A DNA stretch of 64,000 nucleotides from Isurus oxyrinchus (GCA_026770705.1 JANJGN010000121.1:62001-126000), one strand, 5' to 3'; positions 7,915 to 61,701 are shown, numbered from the stretch's first letter. The notes: generated by a model not told the origin, from the letters alone. Program-made: numbers and translations.

Positions 7915-7976
<62 letters not shown>

Positions 7977-14725: not shown

Positions 14726-14765
14726 CTTGGAGAAGTGACAGGATGAAGTAAGATTTCCTGATCAT
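14726..14765 (-). CDS. Signal-peptide exon, cassette 2 (MIRKSYFILSLLQ)
   Basis: Intact ATG and donor in the second tandem unit. Confidence 0.75.
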
Positions 14766-16477: not shown

Positions 16478-16517
16478 CTTGGAGAAGTGACAGGAGGAAG
16501 TAAGATTTCCCGATCAT
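16478..16517 (-). CDS. Signal-peptide exon, cassette 3 (MIGKSYFLLSLLQ)
   Basis: Intact ATG and donor in the third tandem unit. Confidence 0.75.
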
Positions 16518-18243: not shown

Positions 18244-18283
18244 CTTGGAGAAGTGACAGGAGGAAGTAAGATTTCCCGATCAT
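18244..18283 (-). CDS. Signal-peptide exon, cassette 4 (MIGKSYFLLSLLQ)
   Basis: Intact ATG and donor in the fourth tandem unit. Confidence 0.75.
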
Positions 18284-36300: not shown

Positions 36301-37216
36301 CTTGTGACAGTTCAACTGGGGAGAGAAATATCAATATTTAACTCTGGATGGTTTGTAGATCCACTAGACTCGATATCCACCCCCTCCATCTCTGGAGCAC
36401 AGTGGCTGCAGTGAGGACCATCTACAGGACACACATGGAACTCCCCAAGGTTTCATAATGGATGGAAGAGAATCCTGGACACAGGAGTGGACAAGTTCAT
36501 TCTACATTGGCTCATGGTCCTCAGGACCCTGTTTAGTGAAGCCAGTCTTCCACCCAACGCAGTGTCTACAAGATACACAGGGAAACTGTGTAAATATCTC
36601 ATCTCTCTAAACTGACTGGCTTGGCTTCGGTTTAACTTTCAGTTATTTTACTTCCTTATTGTGGTTGCTATGGTGAAACTGTGCAGGAAGTGCGAGGGCT
36701 GGACTCTCTGTCTATTCTGACTGCAGCTGTGATGTGGTCGTTGTGGTTTTCAGTAAAATGAAACCCTCTGAGCTCCTCCATCCCCGAGGTTTAGGGAGTG
36801 AATTCCAGAGCTCAGGCCCCAGGCAGCTGAAGGCCCAGCCGCCAGTATTGGAGTGATGGGAATCGAGGGATGGTCAAGAGGCCGTATTGGGAATAACACA
36901 GAGATCTGGGACGTTGGTTGGGAGAGTTGCAGGAGGTTACAGAGATAAGGACGCAGTGTGAGGCAATGGATGCATTTGAACAAAGAGATGTGAATTTTAA
37001 GTTTGAGATGTTGTAGGACCAGGAGTCAGATAGTTTAGGGGTGATGGGTGAATGGGACTTGGTGTGAGTTTGTACACTGGCTCACTGCTGAATCGGTTCC
37101 CAATCACAGCTCCATAAGAATGTTCTTTTACAAAGACTATTCACCATAAATCTGTCCGAGCTGACGATGATATTACCTTGGAGAAGTGACAGGAGGAAGT
37201 AAGATTTCCCGATCAT
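24325..37216 (-). CDS. Gene 2: Siglec/MAG-like receptor (leader-V-D2-C2-D5like-TM-cyt), possibly with impaired tail
   Basis: Exons 37177-37216, 35947-36315, 34792-35088, 32352-32633, 30028-30321, 28537-28633, 27758-~27839, 24325-24573; an assembly gap lies inside. Confidence 0.85.
24718..25311 (+). repeat. 33-bp minisatellite at the intron position equivalent to 3137-4250
   Basis: Direct inspection. Confidence 0.93.
25440..26810 (+). repeat. 36-bp minisatellite (CCCTCCCTATCTCTGTAACCTCCTCCAGCCCCTACA)n within an L2-like 3' end
   Basis: Direct inspection; shorter arrays at 30636-30825 and, reversed, 50470-50900. Confidence 0.93.
26897..27622 (+). mobile_element. Solo LTR, same family as 19465-20292
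   Basis: TGTCATGA start, shared internal sequence, flanked by (a)gagac-like duplication; absent from the gene 1 intron. Confidence 0.7.
27758..27839 (-). CDS. Gene 2 first cytoplasmic exon with mutated acceptor
   Basis: ttattgcaa|G where gene 1 has ttattgcag|G. Confidence 0.7.
28537..28633 (-). CDS. Gene 2 transmembrane exon (GRDSSKWTVGLFTAGIMLSVFLFGMFIFICVRK)
   Basis: 97 nt, paralog of 5231-5327, splice sites intact. Confidence 0.9.
29165..29680 (+). repeat. AT-rich ~40-bp minisatellite
   Basis: Repeats of taatctatgtaacatttatatataatatttatcaatg. Confidence 0.9.
30028..30321 (-). CDS. Gene 2 membrane-proximal Ig domain, MAG domain-5-like
   Basis: 294 nt, phase 1-1; KPEISQQSECTRRSEGVTCVCVATSNPAGDLTWHLPSANIS resembles the MAG D5 pattern S.C......CxC...SNP.....LPS.N. 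Confidence 0.85.
30930..32020 (+). mobile_element. Penelope-like element 3' fragment with GIY-YIG endonuclease
   Basis: ORF 31177-31506 LIYCIHCSQCGLLYMGQTKHRLGDRSDEH...CHFN...LNIEF. Confidence 0.8.
32022..32300 (+). mobile_element. RTE-like LINE 3' fragment
   Basis: MLRISWMDRKTNEW...TIEGEIESK pattern; truncated copy at 5875-6090. Confidence 0.55.
32352..32633 (-). CDS. Gene 2 Ig C2/I-set exon
   Basis: 282 nt, nearly identical to the gene 1 C2 exons. Confidence 0.9.
33048..33307. other. Assembly gap inside gene 2
   Basis: Run of N adjoining a TG repeat. Confidence 1.
33980..34420 (+). mobile_element. CR1 LINE 3' end
   Basis: ttcttcactcagagggtggtcaatctgtggaattctc...tttctatgt tail. Confidence 0.75.
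34792..35088 (-). CDS. Gene 2 Siglec domain-2 exon
   Basis: 297 nt; paralog of 8809-9105; extra Cys in TLCCRV. Confidence 0.9.
35947..36315 (-). CDS. Gene 2 Siglec V-set exon
   Basis: 369 nt; YFFRIE Arg present. Confidence 0.92.
37177..37216 (-). CDS. Gene 2 signal-peptide exon (MIGKSYFLLSLLQ), single cassette extending to ~37810
   Basis: Same 40-nt leader; exon-1 donor at 37667; PU.1-like site at ~37795. Confidence 0.85.
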
Positions 37217-38029
37217 TGTCCACTCCCAGATATTTCCTCAGCATCTAACTCTGAAGTTCTGAAAGAGAAAGGAGTTAATGAGACCTCACCTCTTGTCCAA
37301 CAGCTCTCGAGAGATCAGAACTGCTTTTAGACAATGTCTTCACAGAATAGTTTGATTCTCTGTGGGATGATAGGTGCTCTGCAGAGAGTTACAAGGCTTT
37401 AAGAAGGTAAAACAATGAAGGACTTGCATTTCCATAGCACCTTTCACCACCTCAGGATGTCCCAAAGCTCATGTCTCTGCAATTCCCTCATCCCTTGAGC
37501 TAGAAAGATGTTCTGTACAACAGACTTGAGCCTCACACCCAGATCTCAATAATCAGTAGAAATCTTTCAAAGGCATCAATCATTGGAATCTGTCTTTATA
37601 AAGTCACAACATCAACAAAGGACGGTGTTGGTGGTGGAAGTGAATTCCAATCGTTCCGTTACTTACCCAGGACCTGTCCGACTGCTCGCCTGGGGAGGAA
37701 CTGCCCACACGCTCTGCTTGGGCTGAATGACCTCTTCCTGTGCTGCTCCCTCTGTGTGTTTAATTAGAAAGGGTGGATGTGTCACTGTGAGTCAAAATGA
37801 GGAAGTGGGTAATGAGTGAGAAGTTCGAGGATGTTTTGTGCTCTCAGCAAAACGTTTACCATGTGTGATCTGTCAGCTCATATTTGGGCAGCTGTAGTCA
37901 TCAAGCTTCTCCATTGGCTCCGTGGGATTAGACCCCTCCCCCTCATCTCAGAGGCTGAAGCGCAGGCGATAGAATTCCCAAATCAGGTCTCTGGCCGTAT
38001 GATACATGTTGACAATCCCTGATATCATT

Positions 38030-39680
38030 ACTGAAGGAGTGCTGCACTGTCAGGGGTATAGTACTGAGGGAGTGCTGCACTGTGTGAGGGTCAGTACTGA
38101 GTGAGTGCTGCACTATCAGAAGGTCAGTAATGTGGGATTGCTGCACTGTCAGAGGGCCAGTAGTGAAGGATTGCTGCAATGTCGGAGGGTCAGTACTGAG
38201 GGAGTGCTGCACTGTCAGAGGGACAGTAATGTGGGAGTGCTGCACTGTCAGAGTGTCAGTAATGTGGGAGTGCTGCATTGTCAGAGGTTCAGTAATGTGG
38301 GAGTTCTGCACTGGAAGAGGGTCATTAATAAGGGAGTACTTCACTATCAGGAGTATAGTACTGAGGGAGTGCTGCACTGTGGGAGGGTCAGTACTGAGCG
38401 AGTGCTGCACTGTTAGTGGGGTCAGTACTGAGGGTCTGCTGCACTGTCAGAGGGTCAGTAAAGTGAGAGTGCTGCACTGTCAGAGGGCCAGTAGTGAAGG
38501 AATGCTGCAATGTCGGAGGGTCAGTACTGAGGGAGTGCTGCACTGTCAGAGGGACAGTAATGTGGGAGTGCTGCACTGTCAGAGGGTCAGTAATGTGGGA
38601 GTGCTGCACTGTCAGAGGGACAGTAATGTGGGAGTGCTGCACTGGAAGAGGGTCCTTAATGAGGGAGTGCTGCACTGTCAGAGGATCAGTAATGAGGGAG
38701 TGCTGAACTGTCAGCGGGTCTGTACTGAGTGAGATTTGCACAGTCGGAGGGTCAGTATTGAGGGGGTGCTGGACTGTGGGATGGTTACTACTGAGGTAGA
38801 GAGGAGTGTGAGAAGATATCCTTTCATGGCAATGTTTAACTGGAATTTATTTAAACAGAGATTCTAGTACTGTGTGTTATTGCTAAAGAAAGGATATGAG
38901 GAACTAAGTCTTGTTCCCCTCAGCCTAAAAATAATTTTCACCGATTTCAATGATTTAGCATTGAAACCTCCCTCTTTGGGCACCAGTCTTGATTTAAACA
39001 ACTCGCACAGCACTGTGGGAGGGTGAGTACTGAGGGTGTGCTGCACTGTGGGAGGGTGAGTACTGAGGGAGTGCTGCACTGTGGGAGGGTGAGTACTGAG
39101 GGAGTGCTGCACTTTGGGAGGGTGAGTACTGATGGAGTGCTGCACTGTGGGAGGGTGAGTACTGAGGGTGTGCTGCACTGTGGGACGGTGAGTACTGAGG
39201 GAGTGCTGCACTGTGGGAGGGTGAGTACTGAGGGAGTACTGCACTGTGGGAGTGAGAGTACTGAGGGATTGCTGCACTGTGGGAGGGTGAGTACTGAGGG
39301 AGTACTGCACTGTGGGAGGGAGAGTACTCAGGGAGTGCTGCACTGTGGGGGGGAGAATCCTGAGGGACAGCTGCATAGTGGGAGTTTGAATACTGATGGA
39401 ATGCTGCCCTGTCAGAGGGTCTGTACCTAGGGAGTGCTGAACTGTTGGAAAGTCATTAGTGATGGAGGGGTACAGTATCAGAGGGTCAGTGTTCAGGGAT
39501 TGTTGCACTGTCAGAGTGTCAGCCATGAGGGAGTGCTGCACGGTCAGAAGGTCAATGATGACGGGGTGCTGCACTTGAAAAGGGTCAATAATGAGGTAGT
39601 GCAGCACTGTCAGAGGGACAGTAATGAGGGAGCGCTGCACTGACGGAGGGTCAGCACTGAGGAAACGCTGCACTGTCAGT
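38030..39680 (-). repeat. Degenerate 33-bp minisatellite block between genes 2 and 3
   Basis: Direct inspection; interrupted at ~38800-39005; a further short block at 60390-60570. Confidence 0.9.
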
Positions 39681-40327
39681 TCTGAGTGTGGTCTGCACTG
39701 TCCTATGTGCATTCTAGGCACTGCCCAAGATTCCGCCTGATGTCTGTGTAACAACAACATCATGTACACATCGAGAATATTTCTTACTGTGTCTGTGCAG
39801 CAAGACAGCTTTGGAATGGCAACACCACTGGCAGGAATGTGAAACTACAATGTGACATGTTTACATTGGAAATTTCTATTATAAGGATGGGCACAGGAAT
39901 TTATATAATAGAGAAAATGTGACAACAAGAAGCTTTTCTTTGAGGCAAGAATCTGGCAGCAAAATAAGAATTTTAATCTATAAGTATCTACAGAACAGGC
40001 TGAGCATTTTAATCACTTGTGTTAATCAATGTAATTTTATTCATAACCCAAATGCTTCTTACAATCTATCACAGCATGAAAAAGGTGCAGCATTCAGAAA
40101 GCACATTCCAATCAGAGAACAGAGTTTAGCAACGTCACATTTCTGTTCATTCCTATTCGACCATGTTGGCTGCACACAGCCAGACAATGCCGTGGTTATG
40201 ATGTGTCCACACAGCAGGACTGGGGAGCACCAGGTATAAGGAAAAGTTTCAGCTTGCTGAGGAGAAGAAGGAGAATCTCTCGTTCCAGGTTACTCTCCGT
40301 ACATTAAGAAGCAGGCATGCCGATGTT

Positions 40328-41023: not shown

Positions 41024-41163
41024 TCAAACAGTCTGTCGACTTCCTTTCACTGTTTGTCTCTCCCAGACACAGACTCCAGCGATAGTGATAACCACAGCCA
41101 CAAGGAATATCACAGCTCGTATTCCCAGGATCAGGATCACGTGCAGAATCTCTCCTCCACTGT
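41024..41163 (-). CDS. Gene 3 TM/tail exon (SGGEILHVILILGIRAVIFLVAVVITIAGVCVWERQTVKGSRQTV*)
   Basis: Acceptor ttctgtgtgttctctag|AC, phase 1; hydrophobic helix containing Arg; no Tyr; this frame is absent from the ORF track. Confidence 0.8.
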
Positions 41164-44100
41164 CTAGAGAACACACAGAAAGAAATCATCACTGACTCTC
41201 CGCTTTCAATCTCTCACTCTGGCTGAACAATCAAGCTTCATATCACTGCAACATTTGCTGTAATATTGACCCATCCACTGGGATTCAATGTGGAATGAAT
41301 GTTTTCATTGTAAACACTCTAAGAGTGGACAATCGGAACTTTCCCCTTAGCGTGGAACATTGGTGCGAATGGATCATTGTGCTGTTGGACTCCCTGTCCA
41401 ATGTTTCTCTCCATCGCTGTGTACAGGATTGTGCTGTAGAAAATTCTGGAAACGTTTAGTGCCGGGTGGAAATCCATCTCGGACGCGTGTGCGAATCGGG
41501 CAGGATCGAGATGGACTCCCCCACGGACTTACACCCCCCGCTTAATAAACAGTTCCAATCTTTACCCAGAGAGAGGGGAGAATGTGGAACTCGCTCCCAC
41601 AGGGAGTGGTTGAAGTGAGTAGTAGCAAATTGGGAAGTGAAATTGCTTGAAAAGCTGGGAGATGCAAGGGTTAAGTGCTACCATGCCACCACTGGTGGCA
41701 GAGTGTAACTGCAGCGTGACGTTTACATAGGCAATCCCCATTATGAACTTGGACATTGGACATCATGTGCAAAATGGGCTCTGGAAAGGTGAGAACATGA
41801 TGTAAGCTTTTCACCAACAGAAATTCCTTCATAAACCTCTCCATCTCTCTCTTACTGTCAGATACTCAAACAACATTTCACACAGAATTACATAAGGAGG
41901 AGTTGGGACAGGTGACTGGTCAAAGGGTTAGGTTTCAGGAAGCTTTTTAAAGGAGGATAGAGAGTTAGAGAGGCAGAGAGTATCTGTGAGAAACTCTGTG
42001 CATCTGGGTGTCTAATAGACTTTGCAATTTCCGCGTTCTTCCATAAACTTGAAAGGGAATACAACTCCCAGAATCCATGTCAACTCTCCGGTGCAGCACT
42101 GAGGGAGGTCAGGTAACCCACGGGGGAGAATGTGTTAGTGTGTTTGTTTGTGAGTGTGTCCTTTTGTGTGCTCATACATGTGGGATTGTGTGTCTGCACG
42201 TGTCTATTTAGGTTTGTATATTTGTGTGTGTTTGTGTAGTGTTTGAATCTGAGAGAGCTGTTGAAGTCTTTGTACACTCACGTTCCACAGTGATGGTTAT
42301 GAAACCCTCCACTGCTCCATGTTCATTCTCTGCCACACACTGATAGTCTCCAGTGTCCCTGGATGTAACATGAGGAATCACGAACCACAGCTCATTGTTG
42401 GAACTTGTTCTGTTCATTGTGATATTCAGATGTCAGGGCAGGACTCAATATGACAGATCACAGGTTTACCAACAGGAAGTGAACAACAATTTATATTTAA
42501 TGGGAAGAGAGTGCTGATTGATTGGCAAGTGGTCTCTGATTGGAGGAGGTGTTGCCATGGAAAATAATGTGTGCGAGCTGTAAAGTTTTGGCAGATTGTC
42601 TCTTCATTCAGCAATAATCATATAAAGATCAGTTAACTTCTATCGACTGTGAAGCACTTTGAGAGGTCTGAGAATGTGGATACTGAGAACGGGCTGCACT
42701 GTCAGAGGGTCAGCGCTGAGGGAGTGCTGATGTAGAATGAAGGGTGTCCGTTCTTACCTTGCACAGTTAGTACGAGGGTACGCTCCGATGAAACAGATGG
42801 ATATCTCACTCTGCAGCTGAGAGTGTGTCCGTGGTGTTTGAGTGATGGGATCAGGGTCAGAACAGAAGTATAGGACAGAGTGACACCATGCTGAGTTACA
42901 GTGTTTGAGACTGATCCAGGTACGTCAGTGGGAGTGTCCCAGGTTAAGACAGATGCTGCTGTTCCATTGCACGTTGTGTTGAAGGTGCAGCTTACATCCA
43001 CACGCTTTCCTGCAATAATTTCAGCAGGGAATATCGTGGGTTTATCTGTGAAATCTAACAGAGAGGGAATGGATCCTTTTAGAGAAATATAACGTGAAGC
43101 ATCAGTTCAAATAGAAATCACAGTCCCACAAGAGAAAGCACTTTTACAAGAATGATATCAGAACTGAGAGGTTACAATGATCAGGATAGAATTTCCTGCT
43201 TAGAGACTTTGGTGTTTCTGTCTCTCAGCTTAATACACGTTCACTCCGAGACACTTGAACTGATAATAGTGGGTGAGGGTGGAGGAGCAGACCAGAGTTT
43301 GGAGTGCACTACCCCATCATTCACTCAGCGATCTGGGCCATTTATTACTTTGCAATTTGTGGGAGCTTGCTGTGTGCAAATTGGCTGCTGTGTTTCTCAC
43401 ATTATAACAGTAAATACAATTCAGGAATCAGCTCATTGGCTGTGAAGTGATTTTGTAATTGCTGAGGTGGTGAAAGGCCCTATAGAATTGGACAGAATTC
43501 GAGAGATCGATGGGAGTGGATAACCTGATAACATTGATGGACACAGTCAATATACTTAATCATTGATATTAAAGTGAGTATTAGAGGTTGCTTTAGGACT
43601 GAACTGGAAGCTATCATCAGGTTATTGAGAATCAGACAGTGTGTTATAATATGCTGTGTTTTGTGTTAATATGTAAACATCACAGATTGTGTTATTTCCC
43701 ATTGAGTGTTGAACGTGAATTGTTGAGTAATTATAACACAGCACTTACCAGAAACGTGAAGCTGGGTTACAGGGTAATAGTTATGGCTCGGACCATTGTC
43801 AAATTCTAGTCTGAAAAAATAAGGTCCTGCATCTCCCCATCTGATATTGTTTATAATCAGGGAACAGTCGCCATCTTTCAGGTCTCCAGACAGCCGGGAC
43901 CGATGGCGGAACCGTGGTAACTCGTGACTGTGATCCTTGGAGTGAAAGGCAATGGGAGCCCAGGGAATCTGTTTCTCATTATTAAACCAGACTCCACCTC
44001 GCGGTTGGTTTTCCAGAAACGATGGATAACTGTAATGACATGCAATCTGTACACACGAACCTTCCTGAGCTGTCACCTCTCGTGGAGTGTCACCTTTCCA

Positions 44101-47100
44101 CTCTTGTGACAGTCCAACTGGGGAGAGAAATCTCAATATTTATCTCTGGATGGTTTGTGGATCCACGAGACTCAAAATTTACAGATGAGGCTGAATTGGG
44201 GGGATGGTCAATACTGAGGAGAATGGCAACAAATTATTTTGGCAGGAAGAATAGAAAAACAGAATATTATTTAAATGGAGATAGGCTGCAGAATGCAGTA
44301 CAGAGGGATCTGGGTGTCCTTGTACATGAATCACAGAAAGTCAGCATTCAGGAACACCACGGAATGAGGAAGGCAAGTGGAATGTTGGCCTTTATTGCAA
44401 AGGGATGGAGTATAAAAGGAGGGAAGTCTTGCAACAGCTGCACAGGGCGTTAGTGAGATTGTAACAGGATCATTGTGTACAGGCAGTTCAGAGAAGCTAC
44501 ACTGGACTGATTCCTGGGATTAAAGGGTTTGTCCTGTGAGGAAATGTTGAGCAGGTTGGGCCTGTATCCATTGGAGTTTAGAAGAATGAGGGGTGACCTT
44601 ATTGAAACATATCCGATTCCGAGGGGGCTTGACAGGGTGGATGCTGGGAGAATGTTTCCCCCTCGTGGGGGAATCTAGAACCAGGGAGCACAGTTTCGGA
44701 ATGAGGACTCTCCCATTTAAGACTGAGATGAGGAGGAATTTCCTCTCTCAGAGGGGCGCTAGCCTGTGGAATTCTCTTCCCCAGAGAGCAGTGGAGGCTG
44801 GGCCATTGAATAGACTCAAGGCTGAGTGAGGCAGGTTTTTGATCGACAAGGGAGTCAAGGGTTTGGGAGACAGGCAGGAAAATGGAGTTAAGGCAACAAC
44901 CAGATCAGTGAGAGCAGGCTCGAGGGGCCGAATGGCATTCTCCTGTCCCTATTTCTTATGTTCTTACATTCTTACCATCTTAAAATATTAAAGCTGCAGA
45001 ATAAACATGCAAGTGACTGACCCGCTCGACCCACCTTCCATCTGGGGGTCCCATGGGGAGGACCCTTCCTGAGCCAGATCCACCAGCCAACATGGTCTGG
45101 ATCCGAGCACAGGAGACACTGGGGGGAGTGACTAACAGGCTCCTTGTGACAGGCCCCGTCTGTCCAATGGCTGGCTTTCAGCTGCCAAGGCCAGAGTGGT
45201 CCTTGCTAAAACCGGCTCAGGACAGGCCAGGACCCCTGTGCAGACCCCCTCCAGCGCTGCAGCCTCTGTACAAACCCCTCATGCGCTTGTGGAGAGACAC
45301 AAACAAGGCTGCACATTACCGAGGAGAATCCCCTCTATGGACTAAGGGGCTGACTCATCACCTTAAACTCAGCAAATGAGGAGGCTCTCGTTCGGTATCG
45401 GGGCTTGGCATTCGCTCAATAAAAATAATCAAATGACATTTTGGTCAGAAATCTAAGGAGGTTGTACATTCCCTCAAAAATAAGACTCGATCTGGGGTCG
45501 AGGGTCAAAGGGCAACAACTTATATTTTCACAACAACTTTAACATGACAAATCACTCCAAGGTGCTACACAGGAGCGTCATAAAACAAAGTATGTCACCC
45601 AGACACATGTGGAGATATTAGCGACAGCTGGCCAGAAGAGGTCGGTGTTATGGAAAGACAGAGAGAAAGAGACAGAGAAACACAGCGAGAGAGAGAGAGG
45701 GAGAGGGAGAGGGAGAGGGAGAGGGAGAGGTTTAGGGTGGGAACACTAGGGTGGTGAAAGGCGCTGTAGAAATTTAAATCTTTTTTCTGTCGATATGTCA
45801 GACTTCAAGACAGGATTTGAGAGATTGATGGGAGTGGATAAACTGATAACATTGATAGACACAGTCAACACATTTAATCATTGATATTAAAGTGAGTATT
45901 AGACATTGCTTTAGGACTGAACTGGAAGCTATCACCAGGTTATTGAGAATCAGACAGTGTGTTATAATAAGCTGTGTTTTGTGTTAATATGTAAACATCA
46001 CAGTTTGTGTTATTTCCCATTGAGTGTTGAATGTGAATTGTTGAGTAATTATAACACAGCACTTACCAGAAACGTGAAGCTGGGTTACAGGATAATAGTT
46101 ATGGCTCGGACCATTGTCAAATTCTATTCTGAAAAAATAAGGTCCTGCATCTTCCCGTCTGATGTTGTTTATAATCAGGGAACAGTCGCCATCTTTCAGG
46201 TCTCCAGACAGCCGGGTCCGATGGCGGAACCGTGGTAACTCGTGACTGTGATCCTTGGAGTGAAAGGCAATGGGAGCCCAGGGAATCTGTTTCTCATTAT
46301 TAAACCAGACTCCACCTCGCGGTTGGTTTTCCAGACACGATGGATAACTGTAATGACATGGAATCTGTACACACGAGCCTTCCTGAGCTGTCACCTCTCG
46401 TGGAGTGTCACCTTTCCACTCTTGTGACAGTCCAACTGGGGAGAGAAATCTCAATATTTATCTCTGGATGGCTTGTGGATCCACTAGACTCAAAATTTAC
46501 AGATGAGGCTGAATTGGGGGGATGGTCAATACTGAGGAGAATGGCAACAAATTATTTTGGCAGGAAGAATAGAAAATCAGAATATTATTTAACTGGAGAC
46601 AGGCTGCAGAATGCAGTACAGAGGGATCTGGGTGTCCTTGAACATGAATCACAGAAAGTCAGCATTCAGGAACAACACGGAATGAGGAAGGCAAGTGGAA
46701 TGTTGGCCTTCATTGCAAAGGGATGGAGTATAAAAGGAGGGAAGTCTTGCAACAGCTGCACAGGGCGTTAGTGAGATTTTAACAGGATCATTGTGTGCAG
46801 GCAGTTCAGAGAAGCTACACTGGGCTGATTCCTGGGATTAAAGGGTTTGTCCTGTGAGGAAATGTTGAGCAGGTTGGGCCTGTATCCATTGGAGTTTAGA
46901 AGAATGAGGGGTGACCTTACTGAAACATATCCGATTCCGAGGGGGCTTGACAGGGTGGATGCTGGGAGGATGTTTCCCCCTCGTGGGGGAATCTAGAACC
47001 AGGGAGCACAGTTTTGGAATGAGTGCTCTCCCATTTAAGACTGAGATGAGGAGGAATTTCCTCTCTCAGAGGGGCGCTAGCCTGTGGAATTCTCTTCCCC

Positions 47101-50100
47101 AGAGAGCAGTGGAGGCTGGGCCATTGAATAGACTCAAGGCTGAGTGAGGCAGGTTTTTGATCGACAAGGGAGTCAAGGGTTTGGGGGACAGGCAGGAAAA
47201 TGGAGTTAAGGCAACAACCAGATCAGTGAGAGCATGCTCGAGGGGCCGAATGGCCTGCTCCTGTCCCTGTTTCTTATGTTCCTACATTCTTACCATCTTA
47301 AAATATTAAAGCTGCAGAATAAACATGCAAGTGACTGACCCGCTCGACCCACCTTCCATCTGGGGGTCCCATGGGGAGGACCCTTCCTGAGCCAGATCCA
47401 CCAGCCAACATGGTCTGGATCCGAGCACAGGAGACACGGGGGGGAGTGACTGACAGGCTCCTTGTGACAGGCCCCGTCTGTCCAATGGCTGGCTTTCAGC
47501 TGCCAAGGCCAGAGTGGTCCTTGCTAAAACCGGCTCAGGACAGGCCAGGACCCCTGTGCAGACCCCCTCCAGCGCTGCAGCCTCTGTACAAACCCCTCAT
47601 GCGCTTGTGGAGAGACACAAACAAGGCTGCACATTACCGAGGAGAATCCCCTCTACAGACTAAGGTGCTGACTCATCACCCTAAACTCAGCAAATGAGGA
47701 GGCTCTCGCTCGGTATCGGGGCTTGGCATTCGCTCAATAAAAATAATCAAATGACATTTTGGTCAGAAATCTAAGGAGGTTGTACATTCCCTCAAAAATA
47801 AGACTCGATCTGGGGTCGAGAGTCAAAGGGCAACAACTTATATTTTGACAACAACTTTAACATGACAAATCGCCCCAAGGTGCTACACAGGAGCGTCATA
47901 AAACAAAGTATGTCACCCAGACACGTGTAGATATTAGCGACAGCTGACCAGAAGAGGTCGGTGTTATGGAGAGACAGAGAGAAAGAGACAGAGAGAGAGA
48001 GAGAGGGAGAGGAAGAGGGAGAGGGAGAGATTTAGGGTAGGAACTCTAGGGTGGTGAAAGGCGCTGTAGAAATGTAAATCTTTCTTCTGTCGATATGTCA
48101 GACTTCAAGACAGGATTTGAGAGATTGATGGGAGTGGATAAACTGATAACATTGATAGACACAGTCAACACATTTAATCATTGATATTAAAGTGAGTATT
48201 AGACATTGCTTTAGGACTGAACTGGAAGCTATCATCAGGTTATTGAGAATCAGACAGTGTGTTATAATAACCTGTGTTTTGTGTTAATATGTAAACATCA
48301 CAGTTTGTGTTATTTCCCCTTGAGTGTTGAATGTGAATTGTTGAGTAATTATAACACAGCACTTACCAGAAATGTGAAGCTGGGTTGCAGGATAGTAGCT
48401 GTAACTATTACTGTTGTCAAATTCTATTCTGAAAAAATAAGGTCCTGCATCTTCCCGTCTGATGTTGTTTATAATCAGGGAACAGTCGCCATCTTTCAGG
48501 TCTCCAGACAGCCGGGTCCAATGGTGGAACCGTGGTAACTCGTGACTGTGATCCTTGGAGTGAAAGGCAATGGGAGCCCAGGGAATCTGTTCCTGATTAT
48601 TAAACCAGAGTCCACCTCGCGGTTGGTTTTCCAGACACGATGGATAACTGTAATGACATGGAATCTGTACACAGGAACCTTCCTGCGCTGTCACCTCTCG
48701 TGGAGTGTCACATTTCCACTCTTGTGACAGTCCAACTGGGGATAGAAATCTCAATATTTATCTCTGGATGGTTTGTGGATCCACTAGACTCAAAATTTAC
48801 AGATGAGGCTGAATTGGGGGGATGGTCAATACTGAGGAGAATGGCAACAAATTATTTTGGCAGGAAGAATAGAAAATCAGAATATTATTTAACTGGAGAC
48901 AGGCTGCAGAATGCAGTACAGAGGGATCTGGGTGTCCTTGTACATGAATCACAGAAAGTCAGCATTCAGGAAAACCACGGAATGAGGAAGGCAAGTGGAA
49001 TGTTGGCCTTTATTGCAAAGGGATGGAGTATAAAAGGAGGGAAGTCTTGCAACAGCTGCACAGGGCGTTAGTGAGATTTTAACAGGATCATTGTGTACAG
49101 GCAGTTCAGAGAAGCTTCATTGGGCTGATTCCTGGGATTAAAGGGTTTGTCCTGTGAGGAAATGTTGAGCAGGTTGGGCCTGTATCCATTGGAGTTTAGA
49201 AGAATGAGGGGTGATCTTATTGAAACATATCCGATTCCGAGGGAGCTTGACAGGGTGGATGCTGGGAGGATGTTTCCCCCTCGTGGGGGAATCTTGAACC
49301 AGGGAGCACAGTTTCGGAATGAGGGCTCCCCCATTTAAGACTGAGATGAGGAGGAATTTCCTCTCTCAGAGGGACGCTAGCCTGTGGAATTCTCTTCCCC
49401 AGACAGCAGTGGAGGCTGGGCCATTGAATAGACTCAAGGCTGAGTGAGGCATGTTTTTGATCAACAAGGGAGTCAAGGGTTTGGGGGACAGGCAGGAAAA
49501 TGGAGTTAAGGCCACAACCAGATCAGCGAGGGCAGGCTCGAGGGGCCGAATGGCCTTCTGCTGTCCCAATTTCTTATGTTCCTACATTCTTACCTTCTTA
49601 AAATATTAAAGCTGCAGAATAAACATGCAAGTGACTGACCCGCTCGACCCACCTTCCATCTGGGGTTCCCATGGGGAGGACCCTTCCTGAGCCAGATCCA
49701 CCAGTCAACATGGTCTGGATCCGAGCACAGGAGACACGGTGGGGAGTGACTAACAGGCTCCTTGTGACAGGCCCTGTCTGTCCAATGGCTGACTTTCAGC
49801 TGCCAAGGCCAGAGTGGTCCTTGCTAAAACCGGCTCAGGACAGGCCAGGACCCCTGTGCAGACCCCCTCCAGCGCTGCAGCCTCTGTACAAATCCCTCAT
49901 GCGCTTGTGGAGAGACACATACAAGGCTGTACATTACCGAGGAGAATCCCCTCTACGGACTAAGGGGCTGACTCATCACCTTAAACTCAGCAAATGAGGA
50001 GGCTCTCGCTCGGTATCGGGGCTTGGCATTCGCTCAATAAAAATAATCAAATGACACTTTGGTCAGAAATCTAAGCAGGTTGTACATTCCCTCAAAAATA

Positions 50101-53100
50101 AGACTCAATCTGGGGTCGAGGGTCAAAGGGCAACAACTTATATTTTCACAACAACTTTAACATGACAAATCACCCCAAGGTGCTACACAGGAGCGTCATA
50201 AAACAAAGTATGTCACGCAGACACATGTGGAGATATTAGCGACAGCTGACCAGAAGGGATCGGTGTTATGGAGAAACTTAAAAGAGGGATGAAATGGTTA
50301 GTGAGAGAGAGAGAGTGAGTGTGAGGGATGGAGAGGGCTTAAGGGAGGGTATTACGGAGCTCGGTCCCCAGGCAGCTGAAGGCATGGCCACCGATGTTAG
50401 AGTGTTGAGATCGGGGGATGGTCAAGAGGCTGGAATTGGAGGAGCGCAGAGACCTCTGAAGGTTGGTGGGTCTGGAGGAGGTTACAGAGATAGGGAGGGT
50501 TGTAGGGGCTGGAGGAGGTTACAGAGATAGCGAGGTTTGTAGTGATTGGATGAGTTATAGCGATAGGGAGGTTTTTAGGGGCTGGAAAAGTTAAGAGAGA
50601 TTGGGAGAGTGTAGGGTCTGGAGGAGTTTGCAGAGGTCGGGAGGGTTGTAGTGACTGGGGCAGGTTACAGGGGCAGGGAAAGTTGTCGGGACTGGAGCAG
50701 GCTACAGAGATAGGGAAGCTTTTAGGGGCAGGAGGAAGTTACAGAAATAGGGAGGGTTGTAGTGGCTGGAGGAGGTTGCAGAGATTGGTAGGTTTGTTGG
50801 GCAGGATGAATTTACAGATATAGGGAAGCGGTAGAGGCTTGAAGAGGTTACAGAGAATGGGATGGTTGTAGGTACTGGAGGAGGACGAGGAGATTACAGG
50901 GATAATGAGGAAACAAAGATGAAAATTTGGACATTGAGACTTTGCTTGACCAGGAGCCAGTCTCGGTCATCGAGCAGAGCGGGTGATAAGGGAACGGGAC
51001 TTGGTGTGAGTAAGGACGTGGTCAGCAGTTTTGGATGGCCTCAAGTTTATGGAGTGTAGAGCGTGTGTTGGAACAGTCGAGACTGGAGGTAATGAAGGCG
51101 TGGATGAGGGTTTCAGCAGCAGATGAGCTGAGACAGAGTGATGTCGTGCGATGTTAAGGAGGTGGAAATAGACGGTGTTAGTGAGGGCGCAGATATGAGG
51201 CCGGAAGCTCATCTCAGGATCAAATAGGACAACAAAGCTGTGAACAGATTGGCTTCAATCTCAGAGAGCAGCCAGGGAGAGGAATGGAGTTGGTAGCGAG
51301 GGAACAGAGTTTGGAGCGGGGAATGAAGACAATGGCTTCAGTCTTTCCAATATTTAATTGGAGGGAATTTCTGCCCATCCAGTACTGGATGTCGGATAAG
51401 CAGCCTGATAATTTAGCAGCAGTGGAGGAGTCGAGAGAGGTGGTGGTGAGGTAGAGCTGGGGATCCTCAGTGGACAGGTGAAAACTAACACTGTTCAGAT
51501 GATGCTGCAAAGCCATTGCAAGTGATTCTCTGGCTACGATGAGATGGATAAGAATGGAGCCAGGGGAGAGCAGTCCCACCCAGCTGGACGACAGTGGAGA
51601 GGTGTTGGAGGAGGATGGTGTCGTCGAGCGTGTCAAAGGCTGCAGACAGATCGAGAAGGACGAGGAGGGAAAGTTGACCTTTGTCACAGTCACACAGGAT
51701 GCCATTTGTGACGTTGATAAGAGCTGTTTCAGCATAGTGGCTGGGGTGGGAACCTGATTGGAGGGATTCAAACATGGAGTTGCGGGAAAGATGGGGACGG
51801 ATTCGGGAGATGGAAACACGTTCAAGGACTTTGGAGGGGAAAGAGAGGCTGGAGATGGGACGGGGGTTTACACGGACAGTGTGAGGGGTGAAAGGTGTAG
51901 TGAGGAGGAGACACTTCACTCAGGGGGGAAGTGTCATCACCCCTCAGCTCGGTTTATGTTACAGCTATGATGTGGATTCAATCACACACAATAAGCTCAT
52001 GGATCTGGGAGCAGAAATAGACAAATCATTAAAAATAGTGACGCTGGTTAACATGGCCAAAAAACAAGCAAATCAAACACTATTATTTCCCATTGAGTGT
52101 TGGATGTGAATTGTTGAGTAATTATAACACAGCACTTACCAGAAACCTGAAGCTGGGTTTCAGGGTAATAGTTATGGCTCGGACCATTGTCAAATTCTAT
52201 TCTGAAAAAATAAGGTGCTTCATCTTCCCGTCTGATGTTGTTTATAATCAGGGAACAGTCGCCATCTTTCAGGTCTCCAGACAGCCGGGTCCAATGGTGG
52301 AACCGTGGTAACTCGTGACTGTGATCCTTGGAGTGAAAGGCTATAGACCATTTAGACCATTTGTTCTGTATGTACCTCCTCATATACCAGATTCCGACAT
52401 GTGTTTTCTTTACCAAATGTGATGAGTAACTGTAATGACATGGAATCTGTACACATGAACCTTCCTGCGCTGTCATCTCTCGGGGACTGTCACCTTTCCA
52501 CTCTTGTGACAGTCCAACTGGGGAGAGAAATATCAATATTAAACTCTGGATGGTTTGTAGATCCACTAGACTCGATATCCACCCCCTCCATCACTGGGGC
52601 ACAGTGGCTGCAGTTTGGACCATCTACAGGACACACAAGGAACTCCACAAGGTATCACAATGGATGGAAGAGAATCCTGGACACAGGAGTGGGCAAGTTC
52701 ATTCTACATTGGCTGATGGTGCTCAGGACCCTGTTTGTGCACAAGCCTGCTATCCAACAGAACTGATGTTGGGGAAAATCCATTTGGAATTCCACTGTCC
52801 AGGGCATTGTGTTAACTTGCTGAGTTTGTTTTAAATCTAACATCTATTTTTGGTCTGTTGCCTTAAAGGGAGTGTAACTGGGAGTCAGGTTAATTAGGAA
52901 TTTTAGGAGTTATTATAGCAGTCATTGTAGTCTTATGTATGTGCTTAAAATCTTTTATTTTGATGACAAATATTTTAATTTATTTTTTTAAATCTCTAAA
53001 GGTCTTGGTGTAATTATTGCTTCTGAATTCAGTGCACACATCTCATAATAAATACAAATTGCAAAATCATTATGATCGTGTGACCACCTTTCTCTCATGG

Positions 53101-56100
53101 ACTTGGTCTGCCTGGCACACATCACCTGCCAAGTGATAACACTGTTGTAATATGCCTTTCAGGGACAGCAGCATGACATCACTCGAGGGGAAGTGTGTCA
53201 TGTGATTTTTAGGAGTTGGGCTTGGCTAAAGGAAGTTCTCTGTGTATTTGTGTGCGTTAGGCATAAGGTATATCTTTCAGTTCAAGTTTAGTTTGTATTT
53301 CTGTATTTGAGTGTTTTGAAAAGGGGGAACTTGAGTTTTGGTTTCACTTTGGAAGAAGCCGCCTATCTAATGCGTTTTTATGACTCTTGAAGGGAAGTCA
53401 AAACAAACACAAGGTAGAAGAAACTGTGCTGTTGCCTAGTAACAATGATCCAGAGGGAAAGACCCACAGAGACCGAGAAAAACAGAAAAGTACTTTCAGT
53501 TCTGTTGAAAGGAGTTGCCAGGAGAAGCAGCAAAGGAGCGGGACAGATAGTCAGTCCCAAAGTAAAGATGAAGCAAAAACCATCAAGTGGAACAGGAGAA
53601 AGGGCCCAAGAAGACCTTCTAGTCAAATCTGGAAAAGGCCCTGTTAAGTGAAGTTAAGAGTGAGGAGCAGAAGAAGGCTCCAAACATAAAGGGAGAAAGA
53701 AGCAGGACACAGACCTAAAGCAAAATAGGCTTGTGAGAAGCCAGAAGATCCTAGGAGACACCACAGGTTGGTGACTCATTACTACGGCCATGTGAAGCCA
53801 TGGTGTTCCATTGACACGGCTGAGCATTGGAGAGACAGGGCGTGGAAGGAAGGCTGAATACACGTGGCGATCCAGGGGGCAGGAACATGGGAAGGAGAGT
53901 TTGAAATAGTGAAAGTGGACCCTTGTGGAAGGTGTCTGAGTGAAAGTGTCATGTTGGAGAAGATTCCAAAGTGAGTTCTTGGAGAGTGGAGATTGGAAAC
54001 TCTCATATGAAAGAAGCTTTTCAGTGAGACTGGTTGGCTCACAGTGTAACAAGCGTCTGGGGTCAGATGAGGAGGGAGACATAGCATTTGTTTCAAGTGG
54101 GTTCTGTCAGTTTCTTTAAGAATGTGGTGTCCCTGACCACAGGTCGTCTATTGGTTTACATCGACTGTGTACTTAGTGTGAACATGAGAGTATAAGATAG
54201 CTATTGTAACTTGTGTTCTACTTATGAATCTGTAAAGGTATAGGTCTGGGTGAAGGAGTAATGTAATATAGTTTGTCTTTCCTAGTTTAATAAATGTTTT
54301 ATTCTTTTGTTAGAAGATCATCAGATGACTCCTGTGACTCTGTTCAGTAGCCGCACTCCACATTCCTAAATAATAAATAAAAGTTAGGACCTATCAAGCT
54401 GAGTTCCACCCTGGGATCTGACTTGCCCAGTAGTAACATCAGCTGGGATGATAACACCATCCAGTCCAAGTTTCACTTTGGCCTGTGAGCAGAACACAGC
54501 TCACACAGTTTGGCCGCAGGTGTCTTCCAGCTTTCTATCCTTGTATATCTGTTCTCATGTCCCTGTTCTAAATAACTGAACCCACAATGTGTTTACCCAA
54601 ATCCGTATCAGTGGCTGGTGCCTTTATATCATTATAAAAACACAACATGGTGATCAGCGGTGGCCAAACATTCTGGCAGCAAGATTCAGTACAGGTATGA
54701 CGTGGTGAACAGCCTTAGATCGAGCTACATGACATGAGACGACCCTCGACGCTTTGGTCAGACCACAACAGAGACACAGCATCAGAGAGGGTTGAAATCG
54801 CAGTGTACTGACTGCTCAGGAAACCTTTGAAGACACAGTGACGGGAAAGAGCTCAAGTAAAGAGCTGGGGAGCAGACGGATCCCTCGTGGTGAGATTACA
54901 GCACACGGCCTGTAGGTCAGTGAGTGGGACAGTGTGTATCGCCAGGACCAGCAGCGGGTTAGCTCAGTCAGGGAAGGCGAGTGACCAGGGTGTGGGCTGG
55001 ATCGCTAGTGAGCGAGGGAGAGTCAAACACACAAAAACCATTATAAAAATCAGCCCAGAGAAGTTAGTGATTATAACGGGCGGCTTCGAGATTGCTGAAC
55101 AGCAAATTGAATAAAAAACAAAGACTCCATTACTCCGTGGTGTGTTCCTGCCACAACCCGTCTTCGTGGGCAGAGCTTCGGAAAAGCGCACGAAAGGGGC
55201 TAAAGCGACACTCATCCCAGGTCCTGTAGGAGAAGGAAGGTCAAAGGAATATTGTCAGAATGTCCACGAAATTCCCCAGTTTGAACTGGGATGTAGCTGA
55301 CCGACTATCTGAATTCAGAATGTTTAAACAGCGTACAGAGCTCTGGTTTCCTGATTCAGCTGTGACTGAACCAGACGAACAAGCCATAAAAATTCACCTC
55401 GCGATTGGGAATGAAGGTCTACACAGGCTGAAGACATCAGGATTAACAGCAGAAGAGCGAAAGGATCCCCAATAGATATGTACGATATTGGAAGACAGGT
55501 TCAGAATCAGTGAAACTCCATATTCATCAACTAGAGTTTATGTCATTTCATCAGCCTACACAATCCATAGACCACTTCATCAGCCGATGTAGAGAAAAGG
55601 GTACGCACTGTGATTTCAAACACAGAGCCTGCAGACACAGTTGTTGAGTTGGCGATCGCATCCACTCCCATGGAAGCCTTCCAGAAAGATCTGCTAGATA
55701 AGACCAAAACCTATAGCATTGAAGATCTACTCAAGGATGGACATAAATACAAAGTGATCCTCGCAGGTCAACGAAGCTTACAGGTCCTCAGTACAACATC
55801 AATTGTTGACACACTCACTAGAACATCCAAACCTAGTGAGACGTGTGGAAGGTGTGGCCTTCTGCAGGCACCAAGGAAATGCCCAGCTTTCCACCAATCC
55901 TGCAAGGCTTGTGGCAGAAAGGGCCATTGACAGCGGCAGGGAACTAGAGCAAAGGCTGATGCAGCTACAAAGAGCCGTGGGCTGATCCAAACAGACCCTA
56001 CACAACGGGGAACCTTCAAGCAATAAGAATGACCATCCGCTATCCCATCAGGAACATATACATGTGGTGACTGACAAACCAGGAAATGGCGATGATGTGC

Positions 56101-59100
56101 ACGGTGAGACGAGGAGCGGTGATCGATATTCCACCTCTCACACATATCCTAATGTGGCTTGCCAATAAATTATGGATTGTTGTCCTTAATGATCTCTCTG
56201 GTCACATCAAATAAACTGAAAATGTCCAATAGGGGTGGGATTTTCTGGCCCCACCCACTGCCAGGATTGTCCGGTCCAGCCGAAAGCCAATGGATTTATG
56301 TCTGTCCCATTCTCCCACGGCAGGTCCCACCATGACTGGGCCGCAAAACCCCGGCCTAGAGTTTGTGCAACACTTGTGCTCAACGTATTTTGCAATTGTA
56401 GAACAATTTCACACCTTTTACACCATCAATCTCACGGAGAACAGATGCTGTCTCATCACCCGCACTATTGGCCAAGATTCCAATTATCTGCCCTGAGAAA
56501 GTTGCTACCTCCCCTTTATTGGCCAAGATTGACACAGGGGCAAGTGCCAACATTCCCCTCCCCCAGCTCAAACCAGCAAATTTTCAAAGACATGTATCCA
56601 AGGACATGGAAGGCAATGGAAAACCTACTGCTGTGTACAACACTTCACCAACTCCATGTGCGGAATACATAGTCCTGGGGTGCAAGTACAATCAATCTTC
56701 CTGGGTGTCACAGATGTTCTACATTGTGGAGACTAAACGCTGAGCAATTACAAGTCTACCGTCATGCGGTGACCTCACACTAGTGACAATCCAGGAATCT
56801 GTCAGATCTCACATGGGTCAACCTCAGAAACTACCCCATCACCTCAGTTCATGCCATAACATTGAAATATGCAGAAAGTTTCAACAGTATTGGCAGTTTC
56901 AAGGGAGCTGCAACATTACAGCTGCAGGAGAATGCAAGTCTGTCAATTGATCCAGTATATTTAGCACAACAGAAATGATAGCAGCTACAAGAGGGAACAG
57001 TGAAAAATTCTACAGGAACTGTGGAAATATCATTGAAAGGGTGGCCTGATTCAACTTGACCTCATCGGGATAAGCGAGGCATCTCCCAGGGAGTCATTTT
57101 TAATGGCAGGCATCGCATCATACCGGAACATTTGTGATCCTATATTCTTCAACAACTTCATCCCTCACACATGGGCACAGATCAGACAAGGAGACTCACA
57201 AGAGATACAGTCACTGGCCGGGTATGAACAATGACCTTGAAGTTGTTGTAGGGAAGTACGAGGCTTGTCAAGAGGATGAGCCAAGTCAACACAAAGAACC
57301 ACTGATTCCACAGGAAATTCCTGCCCATTCTTAGTCCAAAATCACATCTGAATCCTTTCATGTCCATGTCACTGACATCATCGTCATCGTCGACAGCTTT
57401 ACCAGATATCCCGTTATTCAAAAATAGCACAACACACCAAGCACAACTGGTGCACACACTCTAAGCACTATTTTCAGTTTATGTGGTGAAACTAGGGACA
57501 TGATTACAGATAATCTGGAATATCAATCACACTACTTCTTCTCCTCATTACCCCAGATCTAACAGCCTAGCTGAATGAATGATTCACACAGTGAAATCCC
57601 TAATTCTCAAATGTAGACAGACCAAGCAAGATCCACACATTGCAATGTTACATCTGAGATCGACACCTACAACTGCAACTTTGTTAAATTCATTCATGGG
57701 ATGTGGGAGACACTGGCCAGGCCAGGATTTATTACCCATCCCTAATGTAAGAGTTAACCACTTTGACGTGGAGTCTGGAGTCACATGTCGGCCAGACAAT
57801 TTTGTTCCCTAAAGGGCACTGGTGAACCAGGTGGGATTTCCAACAATGGTTTTGTGGTCATCACTAAACTTTGAATTTCATATTTTTATTAAATTCAAAT
57901 TCCATCATCTATTATGACAGGATTTGAACCCATATTCTCAGGACATTACCCTGGGTCTCTGAATTACTCATCCAGCAGCAATACCACTACACCATCACCT
58001 CACCTTATTCCGTCACTGACAGAGATCATGTTTGGTGGGCCAGTAGTGACCAATTTCGCTACTCTTACCCATTCTAATCTCTCAGAAACCAGAGGGCAAC
58101 TTTTAAAACTACAAGAGAAGATAAGGAATGTTCATGATAAAAATGGAGGTGCAGAGTTGCCAAGTTTACAGTTGGGACAAGTTCACATCCAGGATCCCAC
58201 AGAAGGTTCATGATCACCAGCCGAGGTGACAAGGATTTGTTCAGAACCAAGGGCCTATGGAGTCAAACACACAAGGGCACAGCGGTGAGGCGGAACCGAG
58301 GATAAATCAGATCCATTCCCGCTCCTATTCCATCGAGGAGAAGATTCCACATGAAATCAGGAACAACATCCAAGGGTGACAATCCCACAGATCACGGTGA
58401 GCAGTTAAAGACACCTCCAGACAAGGTAACCAGCACAAGATCTGGGTGTACCAGAAGGTTAAATCCACACTTTAGAGACTCAAATATTCAACAGTTCCAT
58501 GCACTTATGTAATTGTCAATAAACATGAACATGATATGAGAAACCGCTTGCTCCCTGTCCTTCTCAAAGATCCATTCCTGCAGCAGGAGCCTGAAGAGTT
58601 ATTGAAAAGGGACTTAATTTATCGGATTGTAGAATGATCCGGAACAGAAGGAAGCCATTTGGCCCATCGAACCTGTGCTGGGCCTTTGAAAGATCTGTCC
58701 AATTATTCCCACTCTAACCTCTGCTCTCTCCTCCACCGCCCTGCAAAATATCCCCTTCAAGTATTTATCCAGTTCCCCTTCTGAAAATTCCTGTTGAATC
58801 TGCTTCCACCGCCCTTTCAGGCAGTGAGTCAATGGTCTCTCTCTGAGCTGCAAAGTGATAAGTTTCAATGAAATATAAACTCTGCAGCAGATCAGAAACA
58901 ATCATGATAACTCAGAATATTTGACAGTTTTACATACAGACAGCTTTGCCTCCCTTCTCTCTATCAGTTATCTTGCTATCTTATCGAATTTTCTAGCATG
59001 GTGAGAAGGGACAGGAAGTGTGACGCTGAACTGCCTGTCTAATCTAAGAGCTTCTGTGTTGTCTTCATGGGAAATTCTGATGAAAATCAGCAAGAGAGAA

Positions 59101-59571
59101 AAATTTCAGGGCATTGATATTGGAGTGCTTGCATCAGGATAGACTTCATCCCCCAGTTTTTATCCCTGCTTCTCTATTCAGCCAATCGCTCCCCTGTCAC
59201 TCGCTGTCCTCCACTGGCTCCCAGTCCAACAATGACTCAATTTTCAAAATCTCTTCATTGATTCCTTATCCCTCCATCCTCCCTCTCCACTCCCTATCAC
59301 TGTCACCTCCTCCAGCCCTGAAACCCTTTGAGGTCTCTGCTGTCCTGCAGTTCTGCTGTCAGACAGGGAGTCAGTGTATATCAGTGAGCACAGGGGTGAT
59401 GGGTGAATGGGACTTGGTGTGAGTTTGTACACTGGCTCACTGCTGAATCGGTTCCCTATCAGAGCTCAATAAGAATGTTCTTTTACAATGACTATTAGCC
59501 ATAAGTCTGTCCACGCTGACGATGATATTACCTTGGAGAAGTGACAGGAGGAAGTAAGATTTCCCGATCAT
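41024..59571 (-). CDS. Gene 3: putative activating Siglec-like receptor (leader-V(x4)-D2-TM with Arg, short tail)
   Basis: Leader 59532-59571, V exons at 52140, 48367, 46067 and 43749, D2 42758-43054, TM 41024-41163; all junctions phase 1. Confidence 0.75.
42282..42434 (-). pseudogene. Gene 3 5'-truncated C2 exon remnant
   Basis: Only the HLNITMNRTSS...ITVE half remains; acceptor and first Cys are lost, with an in-frame TGA at the breakpoint. Confidence 0.8.
42758..43054 (-). CDS. Gene 3 Siglec domain-2 exon
   Basis: 297 nt, intact, CAAG|gtaaga. Confidence 0.9.
43749..44117 (-). CDS. Gene 3 V-set exon a
   Basis: 369 nt open frame, AG/GT intact, YFFRLE. Confidence 0.88.
46067..46435 (-). 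CDS. Gene 3 V-set exon b
   Basis: 369 nt open frame, AG/GT intact, YFFRIE. Confidence 0.88.
48367..48735 (-). CDS. Gene 3 V-set exon c
   Basis: 369 nt open frame; divergent DNSNSYSYYPAT segment. Confidence 0.88.
50280..51870 (-). mobile_element. L2 LINE fragment
   Basis: SLLVLLDLSAAFDTLDDTILLQHL and WMGRNSLQLNIGKTE. Confidence 0.85.
52140..52517 (-). CDS. Gene 3 V-set exon d (divergent C-C' region, +3 codons)
   Basis: 378 nt open frame; SSHLVKKTHVGIWYMRRYIQNKWSKWSIAF. Confidence 0.88.
53143..58613 (+). mobile_element. Decayed Ty3/Gypsy LTR retrotransposon with a second LTR nested in its 5' LTR
   Basis: 5' LTR TGTTGT(53143)...ACAACA(54647) followed by a TGG primer-binding site; gag Zn-knuckle CGRCG...CPA...CKACGRKGH; protease KIDTGASAN; integrase remnants (HWPGMNND, HYPRSN.LAE); many stops; most RT and the 3' LTR are missing; insert ~53205-54456. 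Confidence 0.85.
59532..59571 (-). CDS. Gene 3 proximal signal-peptide exon (MIGKSYFLLSLLQ)
   Basis: Intact leader within a cassette at ~58690-60170. Confidence 0.82.
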
Positions 59572-61661: not shown

Positions 61662-61701
61662 CTTGGAGAAGTGACAGGAGGAAGTAAGATTTCCTGATCA
61701 T
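61662..61701 (-). CDS. Distal signal-peptide exon (MIRKSYFLLSLLQ)
   Basis: Intact leader within a cassette at ~61070-62290. Confidence 0.75.

Follow-up and report, generated by a model that had tools for sequence, protein, structure and literature searches.

Four V-set exons in a Siglec-like gene of Isurus oxyrinchus: a candidate multi-V activating receptor with a tandemly triplicated proximal V exon

The minus strand of a 64,000-nucleotide (nt) stretch of Isurus oxyrinchus DNA (GCA_026770705.1 JANJGN010000121.1:62001-126000; the window, in which positions are counted from the first letter) carries three Siglec-like genes, A, B, and C. Gene C, the third of them, consists of two copies of a leader exon, four V-set exons (V4, V3, V2, and V1), one C2-set exon (D2), and a transmembrane (TM) exon that has an arginine in the membrane span and a 13-residue tail. 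We propose that the V exons are included serially, which would yield an activating receptor with up to four lectin domains, and we put the probability of this reading at about 0.55. V1, V2, and V3 are copies from a fairly recent 2.3-kb tandem duplication. The parts of gene C, all on the minus strand, are as follows.

61662-61701, minus: leader, distal copy, MIRKSYFLLSLLQ; phase-1 donor AAG|GTAATA; within a 2.1-kb duplicated cassette
59532-59571, minus: leader, proximal copy, MIGKSYFLLSLLQ; phase-1 donor; same leader in the shark homologues P0002 and P0163
52140-52517, minus: V4, 378 nt; distal-type V-set exon, phase 1-1, arginine kept
48367-48735, minus: V3, 369 nt; proximal-type V-set exon, phase 1-1, arginine kept, extra cysteine (YPSC and WKC)
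46067-46435, minus: V2, 369 nt; proximal-type V-set exon, phase 1-1, extra cysteine (YPSC)
43749-44117, minus: V1, 369 nt; proximal-type V-set exon adjoining D2, phase 1-1
42758-43054, minus: D2, C2-set exon, 297 nt, phase 1-1; Pfam C2-set_2; boundaries supported by RNA joints
42187-42434, minus: 5'-truncated remnant (pseudo-exon) of a C2 exon, of the same type as the triplicated C2 exon of gene A
41024-41163, minus: TM exon, the last coding exon; arginine in the membrane span (ILHVILILGIRAVIF...), short tail, stop

Each of V1 to V4 is open in one frame, has a length divisible by three, and stands between ...CCCCAG and GTAAGT. All four match the Pfam V-set family (E 1e-10 to 7e-12) and Ig_CD22 above the cut-off, and their best sequence matches in PDB are Siglec-5, -7, and -8, CD33, MAG, Siglec-10, and sialoadhesin (E 1e-15 to 2e-12); the scores to Siglec-5/7/8/CD33 lie only slightly above that to MAG. 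A feature of Siglec V-set domains is an essential arginine of the F strand (YFFRxE), which binds the carboxylate of sialic acid (PMC11011055). V1-V4 have YFFRIE or YFFRLE at this place, in alignment with YFFRVE of Siglec-5 and YFFRME of Siglec-7. Siglecs also share a cysteine pattern, an intrasheet pair plus one cysteine in a disulfide to a matching extra cysteine of the first C2 domain (PMC11011055), and the translated exons keep it, with EGSCVQIPC and GDCSLI in all four V exons and VSCTFNTTC in D2. The extra cysteine of D2 (TTC), the partner of the V domain in Siglecs, lies six residues past the B-strand cysteine. The domains encoded by V1-V4 would be expected to bind sialic acid. As judged by likeness to Siglecs, their differences in ligand-facing loops are in the C-C' region for V4 and in the F-G region for V3.

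An earlier reading of this DNA, made from the sequence alone, had described four open V-set exons with intact AG/GT signals, phase 1-1, and the essential arginine, lying between leader cassettes near 59.5 and 61.7 kb and a single D2 exon near 42.8 kb. This description holds, now with exact coordinates for the exons and leaders and with the Pfam and PDB matches. Its statement that no leader, D2, or TM exon lies between the V exons also stands: between the four, tblastn of the window finds no further V, D2, or TM exon and the leader search finds no leader. The spacers have only repeat fragments, a 37-nt satellite, and transposon debris. Over the whole window, the tblastn tally comes to only six V exons, three D2 exons, and one Arg-TM exon; a pattern search for the shared acceptor and donor likewise gives six V exons, four of them those of gene C.

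The stalk to which these exons lead had been called activating, and we agree. The membrane span, ILHVILILGIRAVIFLVAVVITIAGVCVW, has a basic residue, and the tail that follows, ERQTVKGSRQTV and a stop, is without signalling motifs; the splice from D2 to the TM exon is seen in RNA, as described below. Exons were analysed singly, D2 and TM being translated with one added base to complete the split codon. The split codons are predicted to give valine at the leader|V joint and at every V|V joint, and aspartate at V|D2 and D2|TM. A transcript with all four V exons would have a coding sequence of 1962 nt, or 653 amino acids.

An argument for serial splicing comes from other elasmobranchs. An exhaustive protein search with V2 returned many automatic NCBI predictions with more than one V-type stretch, whose names are best-hit labels and none of which belongs to the window's own species, and models with two to four V domains occur among them in Scyliorhinus, Mustelus, Cetorhinus, Carcharodon, Hypanus, and Mobula. 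For example, three V domains are predicted in Siglec-8 X3 of Scyliorhinus canicula and in models of Mustelus asterias, two in Siglec-12 X3 of Cetorhinus maximus and in the Siglec-12/-13/-10 models of Carcharodon carcharias, and four, followed by D2 and TM, in a partial Siglec-12 of Hypanus sabinus.

Multi-V Siglec-like genes are thus already common in shark and ray annotations, and gene C is a variant of a known design. The Carcharodon models P0168/P0169 have a (partial) distal V, a proximal V, D2, and the Arg-TM and tail of gene C; P0006 of S. torazame also shares the Arg-TM and the tail, ...TVKGSRQTV. Carcharodon provides the models closest to the window, with 96-98% identity in the proximal V and 94-96% in D2, and V4 reaches only 72-79% with any annotated first V. 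The V|V junction of P0168/P0169, ...HVS-V-GLSQEW, is exactly the product predicted for V4|V3, V3|V2, and V2|V1 splicing in gene C. The likeness extends to the order leader, distal V, proximal V with an extra cysteine, and D2, and to the residue at the V|V junction; the difference is that the proximal V of gene C is present three times by a lineage-specific duplication, whereas the closest lamniform models have two V domains in all.

A further hint comes from that extra cysteine (YPSC), which V2 and V3 carry seven residues past the B-strand cysteine. Among the fetched homologues, 25 of the 51 V domains located right behind another V have a cysteine at this site, in the B-C loop, as against 2 of 267 others (Fisher P 8e-21, a value that is only indicative because the rows are related). 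V4 is without it, as expected for a first domain, and so are the single V domains of genes A and B; V1 has lost it. From the position of the residue, it is tempting to propose that an internal V domain takes the interdomain disulfide from the preceding V, as D2 does, and successive V domains of the gene C receptor would then be chained by disulfides.

RNA contigs were compared with positions 42700-48699, which include V1, V2, most of V3, and D2, and 15 of 27 joints are listed. No run is recorded as RNA; X1 and X2, from what we call organism A, are taken as such because they contain spliced joints. The GT..AG joint 43054|43749 occurs in two contigs in each of X1 and X2. Since its V side is only 18-23 nt long and the last 25 nt of V1 and V2 are identical, it joins either V1 or V2 to D2, and V3 and V4 are excluded. 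In X2, a loose end at the D2 donor (42758) continues for 30 letters whose one exact match is the start of the TM exon (41163). The D2 donor is therefore joined to the TM exon, and the C2 remnant at 42187-42434 is skipped. Sequence specific to V1, to V2, and to V3 is transcribed in organism A, where coverage in the exon bins of all three, the copy-specific 3' halves among them, is about 10-fold that in the intron bins. Another loose end in X2, at 46427, is a V donor end spliced to a V that starts AEPSQEW, as in Cetorhinus P0160, so V|V splicing occurs in a close paralogue. In organism B (X4 and X5), the halves specific to V1 and to V3 are without any contig, and a single contig of 258 nt, with one mismatch, has a V2-like exon joined to D2; a lone proximal V in this species would account for this most simply.

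Beyond the V1/V2-type|D2 joint, there is among the joints listed no V|V joint of gene C and, for organism A, no V2|D2 or V3|D2 joint. Contigs over near-identical junctions fit several places, and they may have been dropped as repeats.

The arrangement of the locus suggests the origin of the array. A tandem repeat carries V1-V3 and is separated from V4 by a satellite and a piece of transposon.

43491-50337, minus: tandem repeat, period 2300-2318 nt, 2.96 units; carries V1-V3
50437-50916, no strand given: 37-nt satellite between the repeat array and V4
51488-51919, minus: reverse-transcriptase fragment (transposon debris) between V4 and the array; Pfam RVT_1, E 2.3e-7

Each unit of the repeat consists of one V exon and about 1.9 kb of intron with a fragment of an interspersed repeat, so called only because RNA contigs of another species pile up there; the open reading frames (ORFs) in these fragments match no Pfam family. 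Outside the exons, the units are 3.4-4.9% divergent, with two internal indels. Upstream of the exons, the splice signals of all copies are identical over 80 nt or more. V4, which is not part of the repeat, has an identity to V1-3 of 86-88% at the DNA level and 73-77% at the protein level. It retains the ancestral upstream flank, in the leader-V intron, which is shared with genes A and B; the downstream flank is common to genes A and B and V1-3. Placed in a tree of V domains, V4 joins the first V of two-V models from Carcharodon and Cetorhinus (support 96/83), and V1-V3 fall among second V domains, V2 being 98% identical to the second V of Carcharodon P0169. This grouping implies that the ancestral gene had a distal and a proximal V and that the proximal one was triplicated here.

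We can now state the proposal as a whole. Gene C would be an activating Siglec-like paired-receptor gene of a multi-V type that is widespread in sharks and rays, with an ancestral layout of leader, distal V (V4 type), proximal V, D2, and Arg-TM exon. The proximal V, together with about 1.9 kb of upstream intron, would have been amplified to three (V3, V2, and V1) by the 2.3-kb tandem duplication. Given the same splice signals and the same phase in all four exons, the default should be serial splicing, and gene C transcripts would then carry successive V-V joints and encode up to four domains of sialic-acid-binding type in a row, 653 residues in all. The arginine of the membrane span should recruit an adaptor of the DAP12 type carrying an ITAM (immunoreceptor tyrosine-based activation motif), and the activating receptor would be encoded beside two inhibitory neighbours with almost the same V and D2.

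Of the possibilities raised by the sequence-only reading, a tandem-V receptor is the best supported, though indirectly: the lamniform layout, the valine at the junction, the extra cysteine of V2 and V3, and the V|V splice of a paralogue all speak for it, and a V|V joint of gene C itself is missing from the 15 of 27 joints listed. Further points weigh against our proposal. Levels and isoforms cannot be read from the contig data. V1 lacks the extra cysteine, and in a four-V chain the interdomain cysteine of V2 would stay unpaired. The V2-like|D2 joint of organism B amounts to exon skipping if that species also has a V1. Finally, the V exons have diverged about as much as the sequence around them, as the following comparisons show.

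V1-V2: exon divergence 2.4%, non-exon 3.4%
V2-V3: exon divergence 5.7%, non-exon 4.3%
V1-V3: exon divergence 7.6%, non-exon 4.9%

From 9-28 changes, the ratio of nonsynonymous to synonymous change (dN/dS) comes to 0.5-0.6. The 1949 non-exon columns hold two indels, and at that rate the exons would have escaped any frameshift with a probability of about 0.69; chance alone predicts intact frames in copies of this age, and the open frames are therefore no evidence of function. The dN/dS ratio, the comparison of exon with intron, and the indel expectation do not distinguish weak constraint from neutrality. Since the extra copies have evolved roughly as neutral sequence would, the triplication itself is not shown to have a selected function.

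These figures are what one would expect if the amplification was neutral and left the protein unaffected, V4 and one proximal V, or a single V, being used while the rest are skipped or unproductive and decay. That the duplication is recent and evolves neutrally had been suggested before, and the divergence, the dN/dS, and the chance-expected frames bear this out. An unchanged protein would also accord with the ancestral layout of two V domains, with the passage of a V2-like exon straight to D2 in organism B, which shows no V1- or V3-specific sequence, and with V1, whose six private amino-acid changes include the loss of the internal-type cysteine (C to F, TGT to TTT), V2 being the V exon closest to the ancestral sequence. 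On the other hand, with identical splice signals over at least 80 nt upstream, there is no obvious cause of skipping, and in organism A contigs cover the exon sequence specific to V1, V2, and V3 about 10 times as deeply as they cover the introns. We regard this explanation as unlikely. Less probable is a choice among the V exons, by cassette splicing or by mutually exclusive splicing as in Dscam, that would put one- or two-V receptors of differing specificity on one activating stalk. The V exons do differ in loops that face the ligand in Siglecs (C-C' in V4, F-G in V3), the V2-like|D2 joint of organism B could reflect skipping of V1, and 17-nt complementary sites pair the V1-D2 intron with each unit. 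These sites are, however, only 82-88% complementary; by our estimate about four such pairs arise by chance per 10 kb, and one would have been copied by the repeat. A search for docking and selector sequences, comparing the V1-D2 intron or the V4-side spacer with the units, gave only 17-27-nt pairs of 78-88%, at chance level and in repeat fragments. Dscam-type clusters also array similar immunoglobulin-domain exons between constant exons, but those of gene C are few and nearly identical; with introns of about 1.95 kb there is no steric block, and exons that are compatible in frame leave no filter by nonsense-mediated decay. With such introns and exons and chance-level docking sites, nothing enforces exclusivity in gene C, and the suggestion of a Dscam-like choice finds no support. 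Moreover, no V2|D2 or V3|D2 joint is listed for organism A, yet V2 and V3 are covered as deeply as V1, and differences of 5-10% of residues among V1-V3 are too small and too neutral for a selected repertoire.

The sequence-only reading also raised spare V exons as donors for gene conversion; in a broader form of the idea, they would serve mainly as donors or acceptors for the neighbouring Siglec genes. The excess divergence of V3 comes from a single 19-nt patch with 10 changes, which lies in the F-G region and matches the ...SSNSYSYYP... version of Carcharodon P0170 and P0163; in V1, 3 changes fall within 12 nt (RWGD) and agree with the first V domains of P0163 and P0164. Since both versions occur in Carcharodon paralogues, these two patches, the only ones seen, look like conversion tracts, and the 92-97% likeness of V and D2 exons among genes A, B, and C would fit such exchange. 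But patchy exchange between paralogues is usual in clusters of this kind and does not need dedicated donor exons, and the patches show the array as recipient, not donor; we consider a dedicated conversion role very improbable. An assembly artefact, in which the 2.3-kb units are mis-joined haplotypes or an over-expanded repeat, has the about 95% identity of the tandem repeat in its favour, but the units differ by 3.4-4.9% and by indels, far beyond allelic difference, there are three of them rather than two, no N gap occurs in 40-64 kb, and independent RNA contigs of organism A match copy-specific exon sequence and, with 0-2 mismatches, the unit-specific intron stretches 47296-47444, 48045-48178, and 44306-44526. 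We give an artefact hardly any credence.

Serial use of the V exons thus remains the reading that we prefer, and it has a partial counterpart in mammals. The sequence-only reading had taken characterised Siglecs to have one V-set domain each, which needs correction: primate Siglec-12 (Siglec-XII) has two in series, from an exon duplication (PMC6288428). Siglec-12 is inhibitory, recruiting SHP-2, and has two V domains, whereas gene C has four V exons and a TM of activating type; no orthology is implied. The pairing with inhibitory neighbours has its own parallel in Siglec-5/-14 and Siglec-11/-16, where the activating partner combines a charged residue in the TM with a short tail and where sequences show signs of having been exchanged (PMC6288428). 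Likewise, gene C adjoins the inhibitory genes A and B, with near-identical outer domains (V 92-97%, D2 94%), but the mammalian pairs have a single V.

In the open-access literature that we searched, there is no account of shark Siglecs. Siglecs are described there as one-V lectins, with Siglec-12 as the two-V exception, and fish as being without the rapidly evolving CD33-related group; the statement that fish lack CD33-related Siglecs is based on teleosts only (PMC7226832). This locus and its many shark and ray relatives represent a large, fast-evolving Siglec-like family in which inhibitory and activating members are paired and lectin arrays form through the amplification of exons. Should the V domains be chained within a single protein, gene C would offer a natural test of valency and reach in glycan recognition by an activating receptor; if they are not, it is a clean example of exon amplification supplying raw material that is still neutral. 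A bolder idea, which we hold to be quite doubtful, is that the 2.3-kb V unit is a module of variable copy number, with three copies here, giving activating receptors a variable number of disulfide-chained sialic-acid-binding domains. With equal reserve, one may imagine that variable exon inclusion and conversion patches would tune avidity and specificity. Were this so, sharks would possess an innate system of lectin-array receptors for which no counterpart has been described in other vertebrates.

The neighbouring genes are both of the inhibitory type, with an exon for LLYANI/TEYxQI motifs, that is, immunoreceptor tyrosine-based inhibitory motifs (ITIMs).

About 2.7-13 kb, minus: gene A; one V exon, D2, further C2 exons, TM exon, LLYANI/TEYxQI-motif exon
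About 24-37 kb, minus: gene B; one V exon, D2, further C2 exons, TM exon, LLYANI/TEYxQI-motif exon

Downstream of the gene C stop, the sequence at 39824-40233 is homologous (73-80%) to the 3' flank that genes A and B have after their last ITIM exon, and no remnant of an ITIM exon was found after the stop. The retention of this flank without its exon suggests that the activating gene C derives from a gene of the inhibitory type.

Tandem amplification of exons within the cluster is not confined to gene C. In gene A, one C2-set exon is present in three near-identical copies, at about 5.9-6.4, 6.8-7.25, and 7.9-8.4 kb (window 5882-8421, minus). Upstream of the same gene, the leader exon and its cassette occur in four intact copies (12959-12998, 14726-14765, 16478-16517, and 18244-18283, minus), as compared with one in gene B (37177-37216) and two in gene C.

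Several repeats complete the description. A minisatellite at 3200-4500, 24577-25323, 38000-39850, and 60320-60640 can be read through in several frames of either strand (…STEGVLHCQRV… / …DPLTVQHSLST…). Copies of it occur within or beyond the 3' part of every gene, and those of genes A and B separate the TM from the ITIM exons. The V1-D2 intron of gene C has, relative to genes A and B, an insertion at 43191-43548, inside which the proximal end of the array (43491) falls; it behaves as a multi-copy interspersed repeat, since the RNA contigs of the two shark species have many differing loose ends at 43356-43396. An ORF at 55571-56150, within the leader-V4 intron of 7 kb, has a CX2CX4HX4C-like zinc knuckle (…CGRCGLL…CKACGRKGH) and no Pfam match; it is probably debris of a retroelement gag. 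A 43-nt satellite at 62373-62930 lies upstream of the distal leader cassette.

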